From Cyanophora paradoxa CCMP329 (taxonomy: Eukaryota; Plantae; Glaucophyta), in the NCBI GenBank assembly GCA_004431415.1, contig QPMI01000514.1:186001-250000 (forward strand): a stretch of 64,000 nt of DNA. The letters run 5' to 3'. A program made the position numbers and the translations under genes. A model generated the notes under the pieces. It was not told where the DNA came from. It saw only the letters and a list, made by a program, of their open reading frames with translations, and searched no databases. Positions 45,802 through 59,829 of the stretch are shown piece after piece. Position 1 is the stretch's first letter, and each line of letters opens with the position of its first letter.

Positions 45802-48800
45802 CTAGATCTGGTTGGAGTCGACGGCGCCGGGGACGGAGAGGGCGACGGAGGAGACGGAGGGGAGGCTCGCGGCGGCGCCGGCGGAGCTCGAGAGGCCCAG
45901 CGACGAGGGCGACGAGGCCGACGTCTGCGTCGAGGGGGGGTACGGGCCCGAGATCGACTTGGCCCCCGGGGCCGTCATGCCCCCGCCCGAGGCCCCCGAG
46001 GCCGCCTTGTCCTGCCCACCCCAGGCGCAGGTCAGGCGGCGCCCAGGGGCGAGCGAAGAGGGCGGGGCGGGGTGTGTGCGGCCGACCTTCTCGGCCTGCA
46101 GGTCCCGAACCGCCTGCTGCGCCACGTGCGCCACCTCGCCGTCCTGCGCAGCGCGCGGTTGGCGAGGCCGGGGGCGCGCGGGGAGCGGACGAAGGCTTTG
46201 TACCCGTGCGGTGCTCGCGACGGACGAGAGCGCATCGTACCCGCCCGCGTCAACGAGACGCCTCCTGTGGTCTGAGGGGGTACACGCGGCTCGCACGGCG
46301 GGATCGCGTGCACCCCCCCCCCCACACACACACGAAATGCCGTACCCTTCTCCATGGAGAAACGAGCGAGGACCATCGTGGCGCATTTGACGAGGTTCTC
46401 CTGCCTGCTACGCGTGAGCTCCACCAGCGTCTGGGGGGTACGCGTCAGCTGCCGTCCCGGAGAGGCGGAGGGGGGGGCGGGCGCCGGGGGGTACGGGCGC
46501 GCCTTGAGCCCGTCTGCGAGGACGACTGCGCTGAGGATCTGGATGGGGCCGACGGGGGGGCCCTTTCGCCCTGCGCGGCGCCTCCCCGTCAGGCCGGCGG
46601 GAAGTGAGAGGCAGCGGGGCACGCGCCGGCCCAGACAGTGTCGAGGCAGTTGTTTATGCAGCTGAAGGAGCAGAAGGGCGCCTGGGGCGCCGCCGCGTTG
46701 CTCGCCCCCGTCGTCGCCCCGTCCCGGTTCTGCCCAGCCGCCGCGCGTCAGCCCCGGCGGTGCGTTTCGGCGCTGCGCCCAAATCTCGCCTTCTTGAGCT
46801 CCGAGGGGCTGCCCGCATCGACGAGGTGCATGAGGACGTTTAGCGCCGCCGTCGATTTCTGCGGGCGCGCCCGCCGGCTCGGCGAGGCGCGCGGGGAGGG
46901 GGCTGGACATCGGGGGGTACGGCACCTTGAGGTCCGGCTGCTCGCGGAGGAGCACGAGGAGCCTGTGCACGCCGCCGCCGGCAAGGACCGCCGCCGCCGC
47001 CGCCCGCCGGCACGGCGTGTGGCTGGCCCCGCCCCCCCGCCTTCAGCCGGCTTCCTCGGGCGGGGCGGGCGGGGCGGAGCGGGCGGGCGGGGCACCTGGT
47101 GAGGTGGGCGAGGGCGGCGACGCCGTTGGAGACCGCCAGGCCGTCGTCCGAGCCTGCAGGAAGGCGCCCGTGAGCCGGGGGGGGGGGGGGGGGGGGGAGC
47201 GGTCTGGCGGGGGCTACGGCGCACTGAGGGTGCGGACAATGCCGGGGACGACGCCGCAGTTCGTGAGCATGGTCGCGGTCGCCGGGTTCTGTGTACCCGC
47301 CTCAGACGACGCCGGGGGCCTCGGAAGAGAGAGAGGAGGATCTCGGCTCGGGGGCGCTGGGGGGAGGCTGCGGACCAGGGTCATGTACCAGAGGGCGGCG
47401 GCGACGAAGCCCTGCGTCTGGGGGTCGATGTCCGGCGAGAGCAGCCGCACCATCAGCTGCGAGGGAGGAGGGGGTCAGGCGGGCGGGGGCGGTGCCGGGG
47501 AGGGGTACGGCAGTGCGCCTGGACGACGCCGGCGCTGCGGAGGGTCTCGTGGTTCTCGGGGCTCTCCGCAAGGTACCCGATCGTCTGGTAGGGAGGCCCG
47601 TCGGTCCGGGGCGCCGCAGGGGCGCGAGCGAGCGAGCGAGGGCGGGGGCACCTTGATCGCGATGTGCGGGTTGGCGGCCTGCGGGGCCCCGCTCGTGGGC
47701 CGCCCGGCCGGCGGCACGGGGCGGGCGGGTGGGCGGGGGCACCTGGGCGAGCATGTGTGCGAGGTGGCCCGTGGCCCCCGCCGCCACGATCGCCTTCTGG
47801 TTCGTCTGCCCCGCCCCCGCCGTCAGGCCGCGCCGCCGGGTCCCCCGGGGTGGGGCGGCGCGCCTGGTTGCGGCGGGAGAGGAAGCAGAGCGCGTAGCTC
47901 GCCGACTCGCTCGTGTCCTGCCCGCGCCCCCCGGCCGGCGTCAGGGCGGGCGCGGGGCGGGAGGAGCGCGGGGGAACGCTCGCCTTGTCGGCGAGGAGGG
48001 TGACGACGTAGGGGATGGCGCCCTGCGCGGGGCGGGGCGGGGCGGGGTGAGGGGCCCTCAGAGGCGGCGGGCCTCGATAGCGAGCTCGCTCGCTCGCTCT
48101 CCGACGAGGCGAGGGACCCTCTCGAGCAGATCCCGCCAAGGGAGGACGCACCTGCTCGCGGATGAACTCCTGCCACTTGGGGTCCCGCTCCGCAGCCTTC
48201 CCCAGCGCCTGCACCGACTGCACCTGCCGCGCGGCGTGAGGCCCGGGAGGGCGGGGCGCTGGCCCGGAGGGCGCCTCCGCACCTGCATCACCTTCACCAT
48301 GCCCGGTACCAGGCTCGGCTGGTGCAGGTTCTTCCGGATCTGACGGGCGGGGGCGTCAGAGAGGAGCGGAGGGAGGCGGGGTAGGGGGGGGGTGTGGGGT
48401 GTGGGGGGGAACCTTCTCGTCCCGCGCGATCCGCTCGAGTCGCGCGACGGCCTCCTCGCGCTCCCGGTCCTCGTTCGTGTTCAGCTTGAGGACCACCTAC
48501 GAGGAGCAGGCACAGGCGGCCGGGTCAGCTGCGCCGTGAGCAGCGCGGCGCGGCGCGGGGCGCCCCGCCCCCGGCGCGCCTCGGCGAGCTCCTTGAGGGT
48601 GCGGATCTCGGCGGCGGTGCGGCGCTGGTACATCGCGTCGCACGTCGACTGCACCCCGCTCGGGAAGGCCCGGTCGAACGCGTCCTGGGTCACCTGCGGC
48701 GCCGGCCCGCTCGGATCGAGTCCGCCGGCGGGGCGGGGCCGATCAAATTCCCCTGACCGTGAAGGACTGATTCGACAGGACGGACTTGAGCTCCTTTAGA

Positions 48801-49708
48801 ACCTCGATGTCCGGCCGGAAATCCTCTATGAAGCACTTCTCGAAGTCGACTGCGCGGGCGGCTCAGCGACGTGCTGCGGCGCGCGCGGCGATGCCGCGGC
48901 GGCGGGTGAGCGCTCACGGATGTTGACTTCGAACTGCGAGCGGGGCGCGGCGCGCGGCGGTCACCGAGGGCGGAGCGGGCGTACGCGAGCGGGCTGCGGC
49001 GGACGAACCTGATCCTGGAACCACTTGGTCCAGAACGTTCGCGCCTGCGGAAGGGTGCGCGCCTCAGGCGGGCGCGGCGCTGCGCGGCGGCGGCGTCTGC
49101 GGCCGGGAAACGCCGGACCTGCTCGTTGCGGATGCCCGGTGCATTTCCGAGCCGCTGCAGCAGCGCGTCCTTCTGCCGCATCGCCCTCGAGGCGATTGCC
49201 TCGCACATCTCCTCCTGCGCAACCGCGCCGCCCGTCAGCAATTAGCCGAAGGCGCCAGTTCCGCGGCGGCGCCAGCGCTGACCCAGGAGCTCGCGGCGAA
49301 GAACTTGACGATGCTGGACTTTTGCTGGTAGGCGCCGAGGTCCGTCCCGGCCTCCTGGAGGGTCGCGGTGAGGGCGTTCAGCTCGTGGAGCGGCGAGTTC
49401 CTGGGATCCGAGCGGCGCGAACGGGCTCAAATAGCGTCGCGAAAGCTGCGGACGAGCACGGCGGACCCAGGCGGCCGGTTCTTGAGCCCCGAGATGATAG
49501 GGCGCAATGACTCGAGCTTCTCGGTGAGCTGGGCGGTCGCCGGCCCTTTAGCTTGTACATCCTTCAGCTTGTTCAAGCACAGGCCGAGCGCCGCGAGCGC
49601 ATCGTCGACCTCTGACGCCCGGCGGCAGCGTCAGTGCGCCGACGGAATTCGAATCGCGTGGCGTCGCGCGGAGGAAGCCTGCGCACCGGAACCCACGGGA
49701 GCCATCAT
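45802..49708 (-). CDS. Protein with N-terminal MLKL/RPW8/PUB-UND-like four-helix bundle, Cbl-type EF-hand-like segment and armadillo repeats; multi-exon
   Basis: MMAPVGS|EVDDALAALGLCLNKLKDVQAKGPATAQLTEKLESLRPIISGLKNRPPG|NSPLHELNALTATLQEAGTDLGAYQQKSSIVKFFAASSW|EEMCEAIASR; IRNEQ|ARTFWTKWFQDQ|FEVNI|VDFEKCF; ARM repeats FIREQ|GAIPYVVTLL, NQKAIVAAGATGHLAHML, NHETLRSAGVVQ|LMVRLL. ARM call is strong; N-terminal domain calls are moderate. Confidence 0.75.
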
Positions 49709-49945
49709 AGGCGGCTCCAGAGCGGCGTGTTCTGTCATCGCGGGGCCCTCGTTACGGCCACATGAGATGCCCCAGTGTTTGAAAAGTTTCGGCAAGCTGC
49801 GGGACAGAGAGTTCAGCGGTCTTCGACGTTCGAAACTAGCGCAAAGGCGACGAATGCCGCGAACCTGCTTGCCGCGGTTCCAACCTGGCGCTAGGCTTTA
49901 GGGGTACAGGCTCCAACCCAGCTGCGCAGCTCTGCTTAGTGCAGA
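49709..49945. promoter_or_regulatory. 237-bp divergent intergenic region shared by the MLKL-like/ARM gene and the STAND gene
   Basis: ATG at 49708 (-) and ATG at 49946 (+). Confidence 0.5.
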
Positions 49946-52900
49946 ATGGGATGCTGTAGCTCCAGCGCCGCTGCGTCTGCGCGGGACGTGGTCCACGTAA
50001 ATGAAGTGGTCGTGGAGTTCCAGGCGCCGCCCCGTGCAGCCGCCCAAACGTTCAAACTCCCAGCGGCAGCCCCCGCAGCGCTACCTTACGCCGGCCATGC
50101 ACCAATGCCGCGTGTGGTCGGTGGTGCCGGGCCGCAGCTCTTGACTGCAGCTGCCGGGCGCCAGCTGGCGAAGCCGGCTACGCGTGCCGGGCGCCAGCAG
50201 TCGAACCGCGTCGTGTGCATCTTCTGCAGCTCGACGTTCCGTGCGCCGCGCGCCCGCCCCCGCCGGACTCCGCTGACCATGACATGTAAACCTCCGGATC
50301 CGATGACGACCCCGCGCCGGCCCATATACAGAGGACATGCAGGCGCGTCCTCCTTCTCCTCTGGACCTTCCTCTAAGCGCGTACAAGCGCACAAGCGCCT
50401 CTTTTTTTTAAGCGCACAGGCAGGAGGAGCGCGACGCGATTCGGGCGCTGGCGGCGCCGAAGCTGAAAGCGACCGCCTCGGAGCGCGGGCTCTTCCTGCA
50501 CGTCGTGGATCTGCGGTCCGCCCCGCCGGCCCGAGGCGCACGTCCTCTCTGCAGCTCGCCGCGGGCCGACGAACAGCCGCAGCTGGGGCATCACGGACGA
50601 CGCCGTAGAGAGCGGCGAGGCGAGCGCGCGCGCACCCGGCCCGGGCCTTCGCTTCCGCCCCCCACGCCCCGCTCTAAGTTTGAGCTGACGGCGCGCCGCG
50701 CGCGCGGACACGGCAGGTCGTGCGCCTCTGCCTAAGGGAGGTCCAGCGGAGCCGCTACTTCGTCGGCATCGTCAAGGTTCACGTTTGAACTCGATGGGCG
50801 ATAGTCGTAGGGCGACGGGGTTTGATCCGGGCCCGGGCCCGGGCGGGCAGGCGCGGTACGGCTGGCACGTCCCCCCCGGCGCCCCCGCCGACGACAAGGG
50901 CGCCTCCCTCTTCCGCTGGTGCGCCGCTCACGCAAACGCCCTCGGCCGGATTCGAGCCCGCGCGTTTAGGAACCTGGAGGTCGCCTCCTCCGAGTTCCCC
51001 TTCGTCCACGACTGGGCGGACCGCAGCGTCACCGAGATCGGTGCGACACCCCCCGCCCTCCGTTTGCGCCCCTCGCGCCCCTCGCCTGACCCGGCCCCGC
51101 CCGAAGAGATGAGGGCGGGATTCTTCCTCCGCGACCCCCGGGTGAGCGCTGCCCCCTGGCCGCGCACTGCCCCCCGGGCACTGCCTAATTTCTAACTTCT
51201 GGTCCAGGAGGCGAACGCCGATTCACTTTTCTACTTCGGAGCGTCGGGCGGCGCCGGCTCCGGGGGCGGGGAGGGCCCCTACGCCGCGGGGCGCCTGGAG
51301 GCCCTCAAGACCGAGGTTCGAATCTGCCTGGGGCCCCTTTCGGTGTTGCGGTGCGGTCTCGAACGTCAACGCCGGCGGCGCAGATCCGGGGCTCGGGGGC
51401 GCCTGTCGCGGAGTACCGTTCGCCTCAGGAGCTCGCCCTCGCCATGCGCGACGCGATCTCCGCGGTGCCGTGCCCCCCCCTCTCTCTTCCTCCCCTTTCG
51501 TCTCTGAGTTTCGTACCCTCCAGATGCTGGAGAAGGACTACCCGCGGCGCGGGGAGCGGACGTGGCTCGAGGCGGAGCGGGCGGCGCACGAGGCCTTCGC
51601 GGCCTCGCGCCGGCGGGTGCGCGGCGACAGACGCGACCCCGAGCGCGCGCGAGGGGTCTGCTTGCCGGTTCGATTCCTTTCGCGCAGGTTTTCATCGGCG
51701 ACCCGCGGGACACGGAGGCGCTCGGGGGGTACGCGGCGTCGGCGGGCACCGAGCTCTTCGTCCTGTGGGGCGAGGGCGGCAGCGGGTGCGGCGCCCATAT
51801 TCGATCCGCCGTGCGCGTTTCCGTCCTCTGCTTCTGACTCTCCTCTGCTTTCCGCCCGCAGCAAGAGCGGTACGCGGCAGGGGCCCTGTACCCGGGCATG
51901 CCTCCCCTGCCCGAGCCCGTTCTAAGCATCTCTTCCCCCCGCAGCGCTGCTTGCGAACTGGGCCGACGAGTGGGCGAGGGGTCACCCCGACGACCTGACG
52001 GCGCGTACCCCTCTCCCCACTCGCCGAGCGGCGTACCCCCCTTGCCGCTTAGCCCCGCGTCACCCGCAGGTTTTGCACTTCGTGGGGGGATCGCAGAGCA
52101 GCTCCCTCCTCCCCTCCCTCGCGCGGTGCGTGCCGTGCCGCTCGGCATCCGCGTACCCGCGCCTCGCGATGCGGGTGCATGCAGGAGGCTGGGGGAGGAG
52201 GTGCAGGGGCGCTGGCCCTCGGTGGCCCCGCCCGACTCCCAGGGCACCGACGCCCAGGTGAGTCGACCCGACCTCATCTCACCGACCCCCACCACATCTC
52301 GTCCCGTCTCCTCCTCCCAACCCACCCCGCGCGGCAGGTGGCCGCCCGCCTGGCTGCCTGGCTGGCGGCGGGGGCGGAGGGCTGGCCGGGGCGCGCTCTC
52401 CTCGCGATCGACGCCCTCGATCAGGTGGAGAATGCTTTTATTTTTGGGCTCGCATCGCCAGCGATCTTTTGTGTAGACCCCGCCGGCGGGCAGATGCAGG
52501 GGGGCGCTGCGGCGACGTCCCTCGCCTGGCTGCCCGCCGCCTGCGGCCCGCGGCTGCGCCTCGTCGTCTCGTGCACCCCCGGGCCGGCTCTGGAGGCCGC
52601 GCGGGGGCCCAGGCGGGGCGGAGTCGCCCAGCGCGAGGCCCGCCCTCCTCCTCTCTCCTCTTTCCCTCTCTCAGCCCTCTCAGCGCCCTCTCAGGTCGCG
52701 CCGCTCTCGCCCGCCCGCCGGAGGGACCTCCTCGCCCGCGTCCTCTCCGACCAGGCGCCCCCTCCCCGCCCCTCCCCTCCCCCCCGCGCCCTCACCGCCA
52801 CGTATCCCCCACCCCTCAGGGCCGGAGCCTCTCGGAGGAGCGGCTGGAGCGGGTCGCGTCGGCGCCGGCCTGCCGCAACCCGTGCCCGCCCGCCGGCCCG

Positions 52901-55900
52901 CCCCCGCTCCCCCCCTTTCCCCGCCCCCCCCCCCCCCCCCCTCCCGGCAGGCTCTACGTGGTGACGCTGCTGGAGGAGCTGAGCGAGGCGGCCGTGCACG
53001 CCACCCTCGACGCCACCCTCGACGCCTGCCTCGTCAGCCCGACCCCCATCCCCGCCCCGCCGGCATATGCCTGCACGTGCCAGGCAAGGAGGAGGCGAGG
53101 GCGAGGGGAGGAGGGCATTCGATTCGAGGCGGCGCCGATCCGACGGGGCGTCCAAGAGATGCACGCCCGGCAATGCTAGAGATGGGGCGGAAGAGCGCGC
53201 CGGCGCCACCGACGGCACGGGCTGATGCGGGCCGGGGCAGGGGCGGGGGGACGCGCGGGAGCTCTTCCGCCTCGTCCTCGCCCGCCTGGCGGCCCGCCAC
53301 GGGGCCGCCCCCGTCCGCGAGGCCGCCTCCGCCATCGCGTGCGCCGCAGCGCAGCCGTCGCGACTCCACGGCTCAGCTGACCGCGCGGGGCCGGCAGCGT
53401 GTCGCGCCACGGGATGGCGGAGGCGGAGCTGGCGTCCCTGCTCGGCGTGGCGGCCCCCGGGGGACCCTCAGAGGTGCCGCCCCGCCCCGGCGGGGCCCTG
53501 GGGCGGGCGCGGTGCCTCCGACGACGAAGCCCCCGCCGGGCCTCAGGTGGAGTGGCAGCTGCTCTGGTTCGACGCCCGGCCCCTCCTCGTCGACCGCGGT
53601 CCGCCCCGCCCCGCCCCGCCCCGCCCCGCCCCCGCTTCAGCGCGACGCCCCCGCCGGCTTTCGAGCAGCACACGCTCGCGATTTGCGTTGATGCGCCGGC
53701 GCCAGACTCGCTCTACGGCTTCTTCCACCGCTGCACCGCCGAGGCTCGCTGGCGCCGGCGCCACCGCCTCGGGCCCGGGCGGGCCGGGACTCTGACGCCC
53801 CGGCCCCTCTCGCGCAGGCGGCGCGGTTGGAGCTGGGGCTCGCGCGGGAGACCGGGGGGCCCGGGGGGGGACTGGAGGAGGACGAGGCGGCCCTGGCCGC
53901 CGCCCACGCCCGCCTCGGCCGCTTCTTCGCCCGTCCGCCCCCTCCCCGCCGCGCAGCAAAAAAGATCTAGGAGAGGCGATACATAATCGAATCGCCCTGA
54001 CTCTTCTGCAGGGCAGCCGGCCTCGCGGCGGCGTGCGCAGGAGGGCCCGCGGGCGCTCTCCCTCGCCGGCGCCGCCTGCACCCAGGTGCGTGCGCTGGGG
54101 CCGGTCTCGCCTCGAGCCCGGTGTTTGAGCCCGTGGGCCCGCGTTGTTGATCGAGGGCGGGCCGGGCAGGAGCTGGCGGAGCTGCTGTGCGAGGCCGACA
54201 GCCTCACGCACGTCGAGCAGAGCGAGCTCGCCGGGTGCGCCCCGGTCCCCGCCCTCCCCGACGCGCCCCGTGGAATCTATCGCTGCACCGCTACGGACGA
54301 GATGGACGCCCGCTCGGCGCTCGCGCGGATGCCCCTGACCCGGCAACGCGCCCCGCGCCCGCCCTCGGCCGCGGGCAGGTACTGGATCCGCAGCGGCCTG
54401 GCGGGGGAAGCCGCCGCACGCTACACCGCCCGCCTCGCCCCGTCCGCCCCCCCCCCCCCCCCCCCCCGCTTAGCTTAGAGCTCACGTCTAGCGTATTGCT
54501 TGAACATTCCCCGCCTCGCCCCAGCCCCTCCACCTCGCCCAGCCCCCTCGCTTTCCCCGCCCCCTCCTCCCTGATTCTGCGCCAGGAGGGCCCCGGGGCG
54601 GACGCGGGGCTCCTGCAGCGGGCGGGGAACCTCCTCGCGCGCATGGGCCGCCCCGCCGAGGCCCTCCCCTTCGTCGAGGCGCCTCCCGCCCCCCGCCGTC
54701 GCCTAAGCCCCTGCTGAGCGTGGGCGCACCGCGAACGCAGCGGGCGCGTGACCTGCGGGCGGCGGAGCTGGGGACCGAGAGCGACGTCACGGCGCGTCAC
54801 GTCGTCGACGTGCGTCCGCGCGCCGCCACGCCACCGCCCCGCCGCCGCCCCGCCGCCCCGCCGGGCCCGACGGGCTACACCGGGCAGGTGGCGAACGTGC
54901 TGCGGGACATGGGCCAGTTCGAGCGCGCTGCTTCCCTCTACGAGGCCCGCCCCGGCGCCGGCCCTCTTCGTCCGACCTTGTTCTCATCGGCGCCGCCGGG
55001 GCGCACGCAGGCGGCGGTGGAGGTGATGCACCGCACCAAGGGCTCCGCGAGCCTCCAGGCCGTGCGCCGCGCCCCCGCCCCGGACCCCGAGCTCGCGCAG
55101 CCGCCGCCTGCTCTCCCGGCGCCCCGGCCCCTAATCTCTCGGGGGCGGGCAGGCGGAGACGATCAACCAGCTGGCGGGCCTGCGGATGTCCCTCGGCAAC
55201 GCCTCCCTCGCCCGCCAATTCTTCGGCGTGCGCCCGCCACTGGGCCAGCCCTCCGCGCCCCGCACGCTCCGCTTGGCGCCGCGCCGCCCGACGCTGCCGG
55301 CAGCGCGCGGTCGCGATCAAGGAGCGGGCGCTGGGGGAGCACCCCTCCACGGCCTCCTCCATGCTCGGCCTCGCCCACGCCCTCCTCGTCCGCCCCGCCC
55401 CGCCCCGCACCCCCGGCACGGCCGACGCGGGCGGGCCCCGGGGCGCAGGCGATGGACGAGTACGCGGAGGCGCTCCTCTACTACCGCCGCTCGCTGGCCG
55501 TGCGCCCCGCCCCCCACCCCCGCCCCCGCCGCGCAGGCCTTCCTTCTCCCGCGGCCGACGCCGGGATCGGGGGCGTGGCAGATCAAGGAGCGGGCGCTTG
55601 GGGCGGAGCACCCGGAGACGGGCAACGGGCTGCTCGGCCTCGCGAGCGCCCTGCAGGCCGCGGGGGAGAACCCCGGGGGGGAGCCCCTCGCCCTCGCCCA
55701 GCGCGCACTGCGCATCTACGAGCGCGCCTACGGGTCCGTCCCCGCCCCCGCCCCCGCGCCAGTCGGAGCAGGCCGGTTGACCCGTGGCGTGATCGCGAGC
55801 GCTCATGGGGCGGGGGCAGGCCCGAACACCCGGAGACGGCAGGAGCGCTGCTCACCCTGGGGCGCATCGAGCAGGCGCGGGGCGAGTACGCGCGCGCCGC

Positions 55901-57654
55901 CGAGCTCTACGAGGTGCGAGCGGCCCGGGCCGACCCGGCCCCACGCCGCTAATCGCATGCCGCGGTGATGGTGGCGTCGGCAGCGGGCGGCGGGGGTGTC
56001 GGAGGCGGTGCAGGGGCGGCACCACGTCGACCTCGCGGAGGCCCTTCTCGGTGCGCGCGCGCGCTCCAGGGCCCCGAGGGCGTGCTCTTGCTAGCCCTTC
56101 TTCCCCTCGCTTCCCCGCTCGGAGCTTAACGGCCCGAGCTGTGGCGCTGCTGCCGGGGCGATCGCGAGGGGGCGGGGCGGGGCGCAGACCTGGCGACGGT
56201 GCGGGGGGAGCTGGCCCAGGTCGACTCCGCCCTCGAGCTCCAGCGCGTGCGCCCCCCAGCGCCCCCGACGTCGAGGCCGAGGCTAGCCGGCGGGCGCGCG
56301 CGCCGGCGCGCGTGCCCATCTAGCGCGGTGTCGACGATAGCGCCGCGCCTGAGCTAGGAGGCGACGGCCCGGCAGCGGGCGGCGGGGATCTTCATGGAGT
56401 CGAAGGGCCCGGAGAGCCTCGAGGCGGACATCGCCCGCGCCCGCGGCGCTCGCCTCCAGGTGCCCCGCCTCTCCCCCCGCGCCCCGCCCCACCCCGCATC
56501 CCTAGCGACCGGCCTTCAAGCGAGGTCCTGTTTCGCTGTGTCTCGCCCCGCGCCCTTCGCGACTGGGCTCCCTTCGGCTCCTCCTCCTCTTAAGGCTCGC
56601 CGGATGCCCCCGTGTTCCTCGGCCAGCAGCCCCGCGCCCCCTGCGAGCTCGGCCCGAGCCAGCGCCGCGGCCGGCAGCTCTGACGGGGGCGGGGCGGCCG
56701 CAGCACCTGCGCGGTGATGTGCCGGCCGCGGTCCAAGGCCTCGAGGTATCCCCAGCCGCCTCCCGCCCACCCCCCCCCCCACCCCCCCCCCCCCCCCCCC
56801 CCTCTCTCTCTATCCCTCGCCTTCGGTGTCATCCTTTCCTCGGTAGGAGGCGGTGGGGGCGCTGCGGAAGAAGTGCCGCGGGCCCCACGCGAACCTTGCA
56901 ACCGTCCTCTACTGGCTCGGCCGGTGCGGGGCCCCCGCTCGCCCCCGCTCGCCCCCCTGGGGGTCCCCGTCCAGCCAAACCCCGCGGCGCCTCTCGCCGC
57001 TTTCTGAGCCGGCTCCGTGCAGCTGCCACCTGGAGGTGGGGGACGTGGAGCAGGCCCGCGCCCCCCTGGAGGTGCGCCCATGCAGCGCCACTAACCCCGC
57101 CCCCCCCCTCCCCCCCCCGCCCTCCTCCTCCCATCCCCCCTATCTGCCTCGGATCGAGGGGGGCGCGACAGGAGGCGGCGCGGATCCGGGGGGAGCTGCT
57201 GGGCGGCTTGCACCCCTTCACCGCGCAGGTCCCCTGCCCCCCCGCCCCTCGCCCGCCCTTCCCCGCTTCTTCTCCGCCCGCATTCCCCCTCTTCTCGCCT
57301 CCCACTCTTCCCCGGCGCCGGCGCAGGCGGCGGGGGCGCTCGGGGAGCTGCTGGCGGCCGAGGGGCGCCCCGACGACGCCCTTGCTGCCCTCCAGGCCCG
57401 CCCCCCCGCATCCTTCTCGAAGTTCCTCGAGCGGGGCGCAGGGGGCCCTGGCCGCGCAGGAGGCGGCGCTGGGCCCCTCGCACCCGGAGGCGGCGGCGAC
57501 GCGGCACGCCCTCGGCCTCTGCCTCGCCGCCCTCGGGCGCCGCGGGGAGGCGGGCGCGCAGCTCTCCGCCGCCCTCGAGGCCCGCCGGGGGCGCCTCGGG
57601 GAGTGGCACCCCCTCACCCAGGTCTCCCTCGCCGCCCTCCACTCCCTCCGCTAG
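49946..57654 (+). CDS. DUF4062-NACHT-TPR STAND NTPase (NPHP3/TEP1/NWD-like) with N-terminal MGCC acylation motif; multi-exon
   Basis: VVCIFCSSTF; HVVDL|RWGITDD; VVRLCLREVQRSRYFVGIVK|ARYGW; FPFVHDWADRSVTEI|EMRAG; Walker A WGEGGSG|KS|ALLANW; Walker B LLAIDALDQ; LAWLPAACGPRLRLVVS; CRNP|LYVVTLLEEL; many TPRs (IKERALGAEHPETGNGLLGLA, ALGPSHPEAAATRHALG); TAG at 57652-57654. Confidence 0.88.
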
Positions 57655-58391: not shown

Positions 58392-59049
58392 CTAAAACGT
58401 CGACAAATCGACAACGTCGACGCCGAGAGGCCGGTCCTGGGCGGCGCTGATCTCCCGAGAACTCTTGAAAAGCTCGTCGCTCTCCTGGTACCGTCCCATC
58501 ACCAGCAAGAGGTCTTCGAAGCGGCGCGCGTCAGCAGGCCGGCGCGCCGCGGCGAGGGGCCGCGAACCTGCGAGCTCGCCCATCGCGGCGCCCGTCTCCG
58601 CGTGCGTCGGACCCAGCGCCTCGCTCCGCATCGAGATGCACTCCCGCAACGCTTTCTCCGCCTCGTCGTACTCTCCCCGCGCTCGCAGCGTGTCCGCGAG
58701 CAGAAACAACGTATTCGCCGCCTCGGGATGATTCGCAGCCCTTAGAATGTCAGCCGCTTCCTGCGGGACAGGTCACTGCCACGGCGCGAGCATCGCGCGT
58801 GCCGACGTCGACGTCAACGGCAGCGACGTCGGTGCGCGCGCGTACCTGGAACAGAGACCTCGCCTTCTCCAGGTCGCCGCCGGAAACGTGCGCGATGCCC
58901 AAGGTCCTGCAGGTCATCGCGACGCTCACGTCTGGACGCGAGCTCTTCGCCGTGCACGTGCCCGGCGTCGCCGTGGCCGCCGGCGCTTTCTCAGAGTTGT
59001 CGGAGCTGGCGGCTGCGGCTCCCGCCGACCGAACGCACGCTCCGCCCAT
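58392..59049 (-). CDS. Small TPR-only protein (kinesin-light-chain-type repeats); 5' end uncertain
   Basis: VAMTCRTLGIAHVSGGDLEKARSLFQ|EAADILRAANHPEAANTLFLLADTLRARGEYDEAEKALRECISMRSEALGPTHAETGAAMGELA|DLLLVMGRYQESDELF...LSTF*. Confidence 0.78.
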
Positions 59050-59829
59050 TTCCAACGTGGAAGCGTCGACCGCGGGCCGCTGCTAAAGCATATGCGCTTG
59101 GGAAGCGAGTGCTGGAGGCCGGACGAAGCGATGTCACGCAGCCAGCTTCGGTGGCCGAGCGTTTGCAGCCTGCAGCAGGCTGCGCAGCAGCGCCGGTCGC
59201 GATCGACGACGTCGACGAATTAACTCCCCGTGCGCATGCGCCGCGTGCGCGTGCCGCGCAGCGCTCGCGCGGGAGGCGGAGGCCGCGCAGCCTGCCGCAG
59301 TGCTGCAAGCCTGCAACGCTAACAAAGCGACTGTTCTGCGTTGCGCCTTCTACCCCCCTCGATTGAACCCCAACTGAGCATGTACGTACCCCAGCAAGCC
59401 AAATGCGCTTGTACCCGGGAGTAATTGGGGAATGAGCTCGATACCAGTATCTATCCGATTGACTTGGTGACTCACGCGATCGCGTGTATGGGCGTCGACC
59501 GTGCGCGGCGCGCATGCGCAAAGCTGAAGTCGACCGTAGGACGTCGCCGTAAACTTGTCGGGTGACCCGGGTCGCACAGCTGCGCAGGCGATCGATATCG
59601 ATATCGATATAGCTACGTACCGATATTGGGCTTACGTATACGCCGATCGCTTGTGCGCGCTGGATTTGAACGGAAGTCCTGTCGGAGCCTCGGAGGTGAG
59701 CACGTGGTACGCCACCAAGCTGCCATAGCTGATCAAGAGCTCGAGGTGCGCTCAGGTGGCCGTCGGCCAGCGGGGCGGCCACGGATGATCAAAGCCGGCC
59801 ACGACTAGCTCGGCCTTGGGTCTCTATCG

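Follow-up and report, generated by a model that had tools for sequence, protein, structure and literature searches.

A predicted TEP1/NPHP3-type receptor and a divergently encoded four-helix-head armadillo-repeat protein in the glaucophyte Cyanophora paradoxa

In wheat, the Rwt3.6.8 locus consists of a head-to-head NLR/MLKL gene pair, R3NLR and R3AK, and both genes are jointly required (10.64898/2026.08.07.743466). Fungal NLR genes are paired with HeLo/HELL genes, and the amyloid-linked effectors of fungi are typically 200–400 aa long (PMC9815663). For the family of TEP1, NWD1, NWD2, NPHP3, and their bacterial relatives, it was reported that loss of TEP1 R908 reduces activity and that human NPHP3, NWD1, and NWD2 are inactive as NADases (10.64898/2026.05.01.722283). 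The initial annotation of the Cyanophora locus described here, which proposed a sensor and effector pair, did not know of such a pair having been described in a unicellular alga. For the concept, wheat R3NLR/R3AK is a precedent. The literature library searched yielded no publication dealing with NLRs or MLKL of Cyanophora.

The locus lies on contig QPMI01000514.1 of Cyanophora paradoxa CCMP329, and all coordinates are positions within the 64,000-nt window, that is, the whole stretch of DNA analyzed. Two genes, both real and with open reading frames, diverge head-to-head (Table 1). Their ATGs at 49708 (gene A) and 49946 (gene B) are 237 bp apart, in agreement with the initial annotation; in the annotated gene A model P0001 the start is at 49738, 10 codons upstream of 49708, and the spacer is then 207 bp. 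RNA contigs, which do not reveal true transcript starts, have their 5' ends at about 49905 for gene A and at 49927 for gene B, about 21 bp from each other. The spacing is no tighter than expected by chance in this window. Two further divergent pairs have spacers of 250 bp (a PUS7-like gene and its neighbor) and 359 bp (DJ-1-like and RecD2-like genes), so the earlier caveat that short divergent spacing is common here was justified. The mean intergenic distance in the C. paradoxa genome, which contains 25,831 genes, is 770 bp and is probably overestimated (PMC6704402). The comparison with RNA covered positions 46520–52519; the last exons of gene A and the TPR half of gene B lie beyond this interval and were modeled from splice signals alone.

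TABLE 1 Features of the divergent gene locus, in window coordinates
Feature	Position	Strand	Details
Gene A coding span	45802..49738	-	27 coding exons; EukProt tig00020943_g16297.t1
Four-helix head, MLKL_N-like (sub-threshold)	49119..49708	-	Gene A exons 1–4; net charge zero
Helical linker	48580..49044	-	Gene A exons 5–8; ~90 aa, no family match; EF-hand hint E = 0.12
Armadillo repeats	46087..48496	-	Gene A exons 9–26; Pfam Arm E = 1.9e-9, ARM_ARMC5 E = 3.5e-18
Ser/Ala/Gly/Pro-rich tail	45802..46011	-	Gene A last exon; no amyloid-like motif
Start-codon spacer	49739..49945	.	Contains gene A 5'UTR with intron 49797-49864
Upstream ORF	49763-49752		3 codons; within the A/B spacer
Gene B coding span, DUF4062-NACHT-TPR	49946..57654	+	46 exons, 1,269 aa, no internal stop
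N-terminal MGCCSS	49946..49963	+	Predicted myristoylation at G2 and palmitoylation at C3 and C4
DUF4062 TIR-like domain	50210..51141	+	Gene B exons 1–7; 11-nt micro-exon 50332-50342
NACHT P-loop	51688..52637	+	Walker A over exons 11/12 (51688-51785, 51862-51869); Walker B in exon 16 (52338-52424)
TPR region, TPR_10/TPR_12 type	54586..57654	+	~11 repeats by length; exons of 42–213 nt, mixed phase

Gene B encodes a DUF4062-NACHT-TPR protein with intact Walker A and B motifs, as originally read. The motifs GEGGSGKS (Walker A, aa 362–369) and LLAIDALD (Walker B, aa 452–459) are both located in conserved alignment columns. The joined gene B model, compared with bacterial loci, was collinear over about 1,000–1,200 aa with bacterial DUF4062-NACHT-TPR proteins (26%–34% identity, best E = 2e-108), and a profile of the bacterial core matched it at E = 5e-138. 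The collinear bacterial proteins pass the Pfam cut-off for DUF4062, and they also match 11gz, the structure of the TEP1 TIR domain, at E = 2e-23. Of 127 columns conserved among 39 bacterial DUF4062-NACHT proteins, 90 are retained in gene B, including the catalytic Glu. In the Pfam and PDB searches the exons of gene B were used singly, and because they are short, no direct exon-level match to DUF4062 or NACHT was obtained in Pfam, PDB, or plasmids. Individual exons matched TPR_12, TPR_10, and TPR_NPHP3, the latter on the last exon at E = 5e-4; a repeat-per-exon layout is absent from the TPR exons. Two junctions, one within exon 6 and the other between exons 28 and 29, are uncertain, and the frame is kept in both. 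Gene B RNA was present only as fragments of 158–348 nt, with none in run X19, although contigs cannot rank expression. In a tree with prokaryotic rows only, gene B formed a long branch and was not placed.

Gene B has its domains in the same order as TEP1, NWD1, NWD2, NPHP3, and their bacterial relatives (10.64898/2026.05.01.722283); like them it carries the two Walker motifs, and its E229 and R167 match TEP1 E1008 and R976. Unlike them, it has an acylation-type start with an 88-aa Ala/Pro-rich leader, and Gln (Q99) occupies the position of R908. Judged from its predicted protein, gene B is an intact NLR-like STAND protein of the TEP1/NPHP3 type, and its TIR-like DUF4062 domain, which probably bears an NADase site, appears to be an effector of the NADase type. 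Given the Gln at the R908 position and the inactivity of human NPHP3, NWD1, and NWD2, this effector may be weak.

The product of gene A is 696 aa long from ATG 49738 and 686 aa from ATG 49708, and the frame is open up to the stop codon at 45802–45804. Its RNA was recovered as a single contig of 2.4–2.6 kb; RNA contigs matched the exon sums exactly over 46627–49283 and added the intron in the 5'UTR. The helical head of about 110 aa followed by ARM repeats, noted previously, was found again, with four helices predicted at approximately residues 15–129 of P0001. In Pfam, ARM repeats are the only C-terminal domain, and no kinase or pseudokinase is present. Pfam MLKL_N matched the head at E = 9.4e-5 (22.4 bits over 73 residues, below the cut-off of 27), and exon 3 by itself at E = 0.006. 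The look-alikes of the head in the Atlas were MLKL_N, RPW8, and MCAfunc clusters and also plant U-box heads, which are not killers; nine of the ten best family-bearing matches fall in one family or clan, and the scores (0.76–0.82) lie in a range that shuffled proteins reach one time in three. The head contains 13 basic and 13 acidic residues and has no net positive charge.

Structure searches with two single-sequence AlphaFold models of gene A (pLDDT 43 and 57) returned generic helical bundles from PDB and the Atlas. Chains of MLKL, RPW8, or Cbl did not rise above background, and neither Rx-CC (E = 1.1) nor NRG1.1 CC-R (E = 2.1) was significant. Word searches with the intron-containing frame and with P0001 regions 11–230 and 11–635, which need shared exact words and a length window of 0.55–1.75, found gene A itself or nothing, as did HMMER with exon 3 (a 39-aa query) and a metagenome scan. 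A Cbl TKB module (4H + EF-hand + SH2) was rejected, as no Cbl match was obtained in Pfam or PDB sequences and the EF-hand hint was the only trace. A tie of DUF7792 to plant ARO proteins was not confirmed and was set aside.

In plant U-box/ARM (PUB) proteins, a four-helix head precedes the ARM repeats. Like proteins with PUB10_N/PUB2_N and DUF7792/MCAfunc heads, gene A carries a four-helix head of this broad group ahead of ARM repeats. Unlike plant U-box/ARM proteins, it has a linker where the U-box would be (no U-box in Pfam at E up to 1), and direct sequence homology was not found. Like animal and plant MLKL, it has an N-terminus with four predicted helices, which matches the MLKL_N profile weakly, but it has ARM repeats instead of a kinase or pseudokinase, and its head is not basic. 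On profile and look-alike grounds the head is assigned to the MLKL/RPW8/MCAfunc/PUB-N group of four-helix heads. Of the earlier designation "MLKL-like executioner," membership in the four-helix group stands, while the executioner part finds no support in the sub-threshold MLKL_N match, the U-box look-alikes, the lack of a kinase, and the generic folds.

We infer that A and B are probably two independent genes served by one short, ordinary bidirectional promoter, as is common in this compact genome. Since gene B has its own predicted effector domain, a point that the initial annotation did not weigh, it has no need to borrow one from gene A. Further observations count for independence; a weak one is the contrast between the single RNA contig of gene A and the short RNA fragments of gene B. 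A second DUF4062-NACHT-TPR gene in the window, 30 kb away (17318 to ~7920, minus strand), showed no A-like neighbor; it was the one gene B paralogue inspected, and the similar pairing of paralogues envisaged earlier was not seen in it. An A-like gene occurred in none of the 120 bacterial loci. Against independence, a head-to-head NLR/MLKL pair would arise at least once by chance with a probability of only 0.5%–11%, before other suggestive neighbor types are considered; this estimate used assumed ranges, not counts, of 30–150 NLR-like and 8–40 MLKL-like genes. The close transcript ends, the working wheat pair, and the possible weakness of the gene B effector count against it as well. An amyloid motif joining the two proteins had not been noticed before and was not found here: a RHIM core is missing, and alignment of the gene B head with the gene A tail is at shuffle level (p = 0.54). 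A short match between the first residues of gene B and the last ARM repeat of gene A (shuffle p = 0.008) was post hoc and Ala/Ser-rich, and was dismissed as compositional.

If the genes are independent, lipid anchors would keep the gene B protein at the membrane, a ligand bound to the TPRs would induce oligomerization of the NACHT domain, and the DUF4062 domains of the protein itself, clustered in this way, would form an enzyme that cleaves NAD. The readily transcribed gene A, a four-helix-head-plus-ARM protein, would most likely be a membrane-binding or scaffolding adaptor outside gene B control.

It is unlikely that gene B instead has no immune role and, like animal NPHP3, works in the flagellum or in trafficking, with its myristoylated N-terminus targeting it to the flagellum; gene A would then be an ARM scaffold with no relation to it, or a flagellar protein expressed along with it. 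The ciliary possibility raised earlier for NPHP3-like proteins does fit the N-terminus, as MGCCSS obeys the UNC119 high-affinity cargo rule of small residues at positions 3–5 (PMC8246649), a pattern match only. The TPR_NPHP3 match, the shared NPHP3 domain order, TPR exons that are not interchangeable cassettes, and loss of the TEP1 R908 equivalent also agree with such a role. However, gene B retains the catalytic Glu and the P-loop, and its architecture is frequent in bacteria, which have no cilia.

The co-regulated sensor/executor pair is quite unlikely, and adjacency is the sole positive evidence for it. Just as doubtfully, acylated gene B would sit at the membrane and sense a signal from a parasite or a virus, contact with the ARM repeats or an NAD-derived signal would free the gene A head, and the head would oligomerize and permeabilize the membrane. 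The head-to-head genes with their close transcript ends, the MLKL_N matches and look-alikes of gene A, and the low chance expectation for exactly such a pairing are consistent with this proposal, as are the precedents. As in wheat R3NLR/R3AK (10.64898/2026.08.07.743466), a STAND receptor gene lies head-to-head with a four-helix-head gene; but R3AK has a kinase domain where gene A has ARM repeats, and R3NLR is a CC-NB-ARC-LRR protein, whereas gene B has the order DUF4062-NACHT-TPR and thereby includes an enzyme domain of its own. As in fungal NLR and HeLo/HELL-type pairs (PMC9815663), a NACHT-TPR gene adjoins a gene with an MLKL-like head; unlike them, A and B share no amyloid motif, gene B has a full enzyme domain instead of a short signaling N-terminus, and the candidate effector, at full P0001 length, exceeds the typical fungal size. 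The absence of an MLKL kinase or brace, the lack of net positive charge on the head, the fold searches, the effector domain that gene B itself has, the partnerless paralogue, and the ordinary spacing also argue against pairing.

Decidedly doubtful is the specific version of a genetically linked, two-part death module in a unicellular plant relative, with a TIR-like NADase receptor, anchored by lipids, that switches on an executor composed of an MLKL head and ARM repeats and lacking a kinase; the ARM repeats would take the regulatory role of the MLKL pseudokinase, perhaps sensing an NAD-derived signal. A generic helical bundle resembling MLKL by chance is highly improbable for the gene A head, since the Pfam match across 73 residues, the family agreement in the Atlas, and four modeled helices of suitable lengths oppose it, despite the sub-cut-off score, the Atlas scores attained by shuffled proteins, and the MLKL-family chains missing from the structure-search results.

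The known cDNA structure of gene A makes it inexpensive to test. On present evidence, the locus adds to the algal repertoire an intact receptor of the TEP1/NPHP3 type, in which an NADase site is probable, and an orphan protein that combines a four-helix head with ARM repeats. Were the pairing real, paired immunity of the NLR/MLKL type would also exist in a glaucophyte, and a four-helix executor regulated by ARM repeats would be defined; such a receptor/executor module would recall, with other parts, the TIR-to-pore logic found in land plants.

RNA contigs (four probable RNA runs, three studies) were spliced at the modelled joints of the four-helix-head and ARM-repeat gene (gene A). One contig of 2.4-2.6 kb spanned the RNA-compared part of the gene in two runs, and exon sums between mapped contig pieces matched exactly (831 and 242 nt). 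The recorded product, EukProt tig00020943_g16297.t1, equals our model plus 10 residues, starting from upstream ATG 49738; a three-codon upstream ORF immediately precedes this ATG in the spliced 5'UTR, which RNA extends by an additional intron and a UTR exon to about 49905. Introns in this GC-rich window are short (medians 68-76 nt) and of GT/GC-AG type. One unusually long intron (129 nt) harbored no hidden micro-exon according to RNA. For the divergent DUF4062-NACHT-TPR gene (gene B), RNA fragments begin at 49927 and back an 11-nt micro-exon within the DUF4062 motif; the RNA comparison reaches 52519, and downstream exons, including irregular TPR exons, rest on the model. Compared with its bacterial homologues, gene B carries 30 extra aa in exon 6, and an in-frame 51-nt GT-AG stretch within this insertion could be an unmodelled intron. 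Two further unusually long introns (208 and 244 nt) fall in the modelled part of gene B downstream of 52519.

Positions of genes and minor features in the window
Feature	Position	Strand	Properties
PUS7-like gene and neighbor	starts 1494/1745		divergent
Second DUF4062-NACHT-TPR gene	17318 to about 7920	minus
DJ-1-like and RecD2-like genes	starts 25747/26107		divergent
Gene A coding model	ATG 49708 to stop 45802	minus	27 exons, open frame, 686 aa
Gene A long intron	48023-48151
Upstream ORF	49763-49752	minus
Gene B coding model	ATG 49946 to stop 57654	plus	46 exons, 1269 aa, 0 internal stops
Gene B exon 6	50851-51040	plus
Gene B long introns	53033-53240, 56460-56703
TPR gene, tail-to-tail with gene B	about 58392-59220	minus

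Gene A encodes a four-helix head, a 90-aa linker assigned to no family in domain searches, ARM repeats, and a Ser/Ala-rich tail; the helical head and the ARM repeats agree with the initial annotation. The single-sequence structure model of the head comprised four helices (pLDDT 57), and structure searches with it returned generic bundles only. Pfam MLKL_N matched the head with E=9.4e-5 at 22.4 bits, below the cut-off of 27, and exon 3 alone with E=0.006. Language-model look-alikes were plant clusters with PUB10_N, DUF7792, MCAfunc, RPW8, and MLKL_N (scores 0.76-0.82, leads only by the tool's own rating). Sequence searches with an exon and with the database's own protein record as full-length query found no homologues. 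Gene A probably belongs to a broad group of MLKL-like four-helix heads, which also includes heads of U-box ligases not known to kill. Pfam detected neither a U-box nor a kinase in gene A, and it is not an MLKL.

Because the short exons of gene B escape Pfam, 120 prokaryotic loci were retrieved by searching DNA for a pattern encoding the SSTFxDMxxER motif; gene models were searched exon by exon, and the joined gene B model was compared with these loci only. The alignments of this model extended to about 1200 aa (best E 2e-108), the best-aligning proteins being DUF4062-NACHT-TPR by Pfam. Of 127 strongly conserved columns the model retained 90, among them both Walker motifs (A and B) and SVTExE. 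The DUF4062 domains of TEP1 and of bacterial proteins have been shown to be TIR-like NADases; human NPHP3, NWD1, and NWD2 had no activity (10.64898/2026.05.01.722283). One of the prokaryotic proteins aligned to the TEP1 TIR structure, and a numbering offset of 893 placed 4/4 active-site residues named in that study on matching letters. Since gene B retains the equivalents of E1008 and R976 (the R908 position is Gln) and DUF4062 domains act as NADases elsewhere, it has a built-in candidate effector of uncertain strength. The MGCCSS start suggests lipid anchoring and agrees as a sequence pattern with the UNC119 ciliary cargo rule. A ciliary NPHP3-like role for gene B is rather unlikely.

The second DUF4062-NACHT-TPR gene keeps the SVTExE glutamates, and its first DUF4062 motif is altered. 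Its Walker A as spliced, GEAGSGRGE, lacks Lys-Ser/Thr in a splice model with a 215-nt intron there, and the TPRs are followed by a long stretch of low complexity and then by a helical C-terminal region; the gene is possibly a P-loop-dead paralogue. An exon of the tail-to-tail TPR gene resembles the gene B repeats (39% identity, 46 aa, E=0.006).

The start codons of genes A and B are 237 bp apart (207 bp from the annotated start) and their RNA contig ends about 21 bp apart; therefore, a shared promoter is likely. We consider them, with moderate confidence, two independent genes. The sensor-effector module proposed initially matches the head-to-head layout, and the chance probability of this exact NLR/MLKL pairing is 0.5-11% (assumed family sizes 30-150 and 8-40). 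However, ordinary divergent pairs are comparably tight, as had been cautioned: 250 bp for the PUS7-like gene and its neighbor and 359 bp for DJ-1-like/RecD2-like (PUS7 and DJ-1 named from motifs read by eye; OB_YrrC on RecD2-like, E=7.5e-6). The genomic mean intergenic distance is 770 bp (PMC6704402). Moreover, gene B has its own candidate effector, no further gene A relative was detected in the window despite the second DUF4062-NACHT-TPR gene, and none of the 120 prokaryotic loci contained an A-like gene. In RNA runs gene A was fully assembled and gene B fragmentary or missing, weak evidence against tight co-regulation. A head-to-head wheat NLR/MLKL pair, killing via its four-helix head (10.64898/2026.08.07.743466), is alike in layout, but the kinase is absent here. 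Fungal NLR/HeLo-type pairs rely on amyloid motifs (PMC9815663); none links genes A and B, as initially noted. A true sensor/executor pair is quite improbable. That the MLKL likeness of gene A is spurious is very improbable. Overall, the initial observation is confirmed and its interpretation partly supported.

The literature search found no paper on NLR/MLKL-type genes in Cyanophora. Bacterial DUF4062-NACHT-TPR proteins of TEP1 type occurred in many phyla (fetched loci L008:2761-6162, L074:707-3784, L106:2165-5764, L057:2391-6245, and others), and the two scanned against PADLOC had no hits beyond generic TPR models and a weak one to mad8. These bacterial proteins may be uncharacterised NADase receptors.
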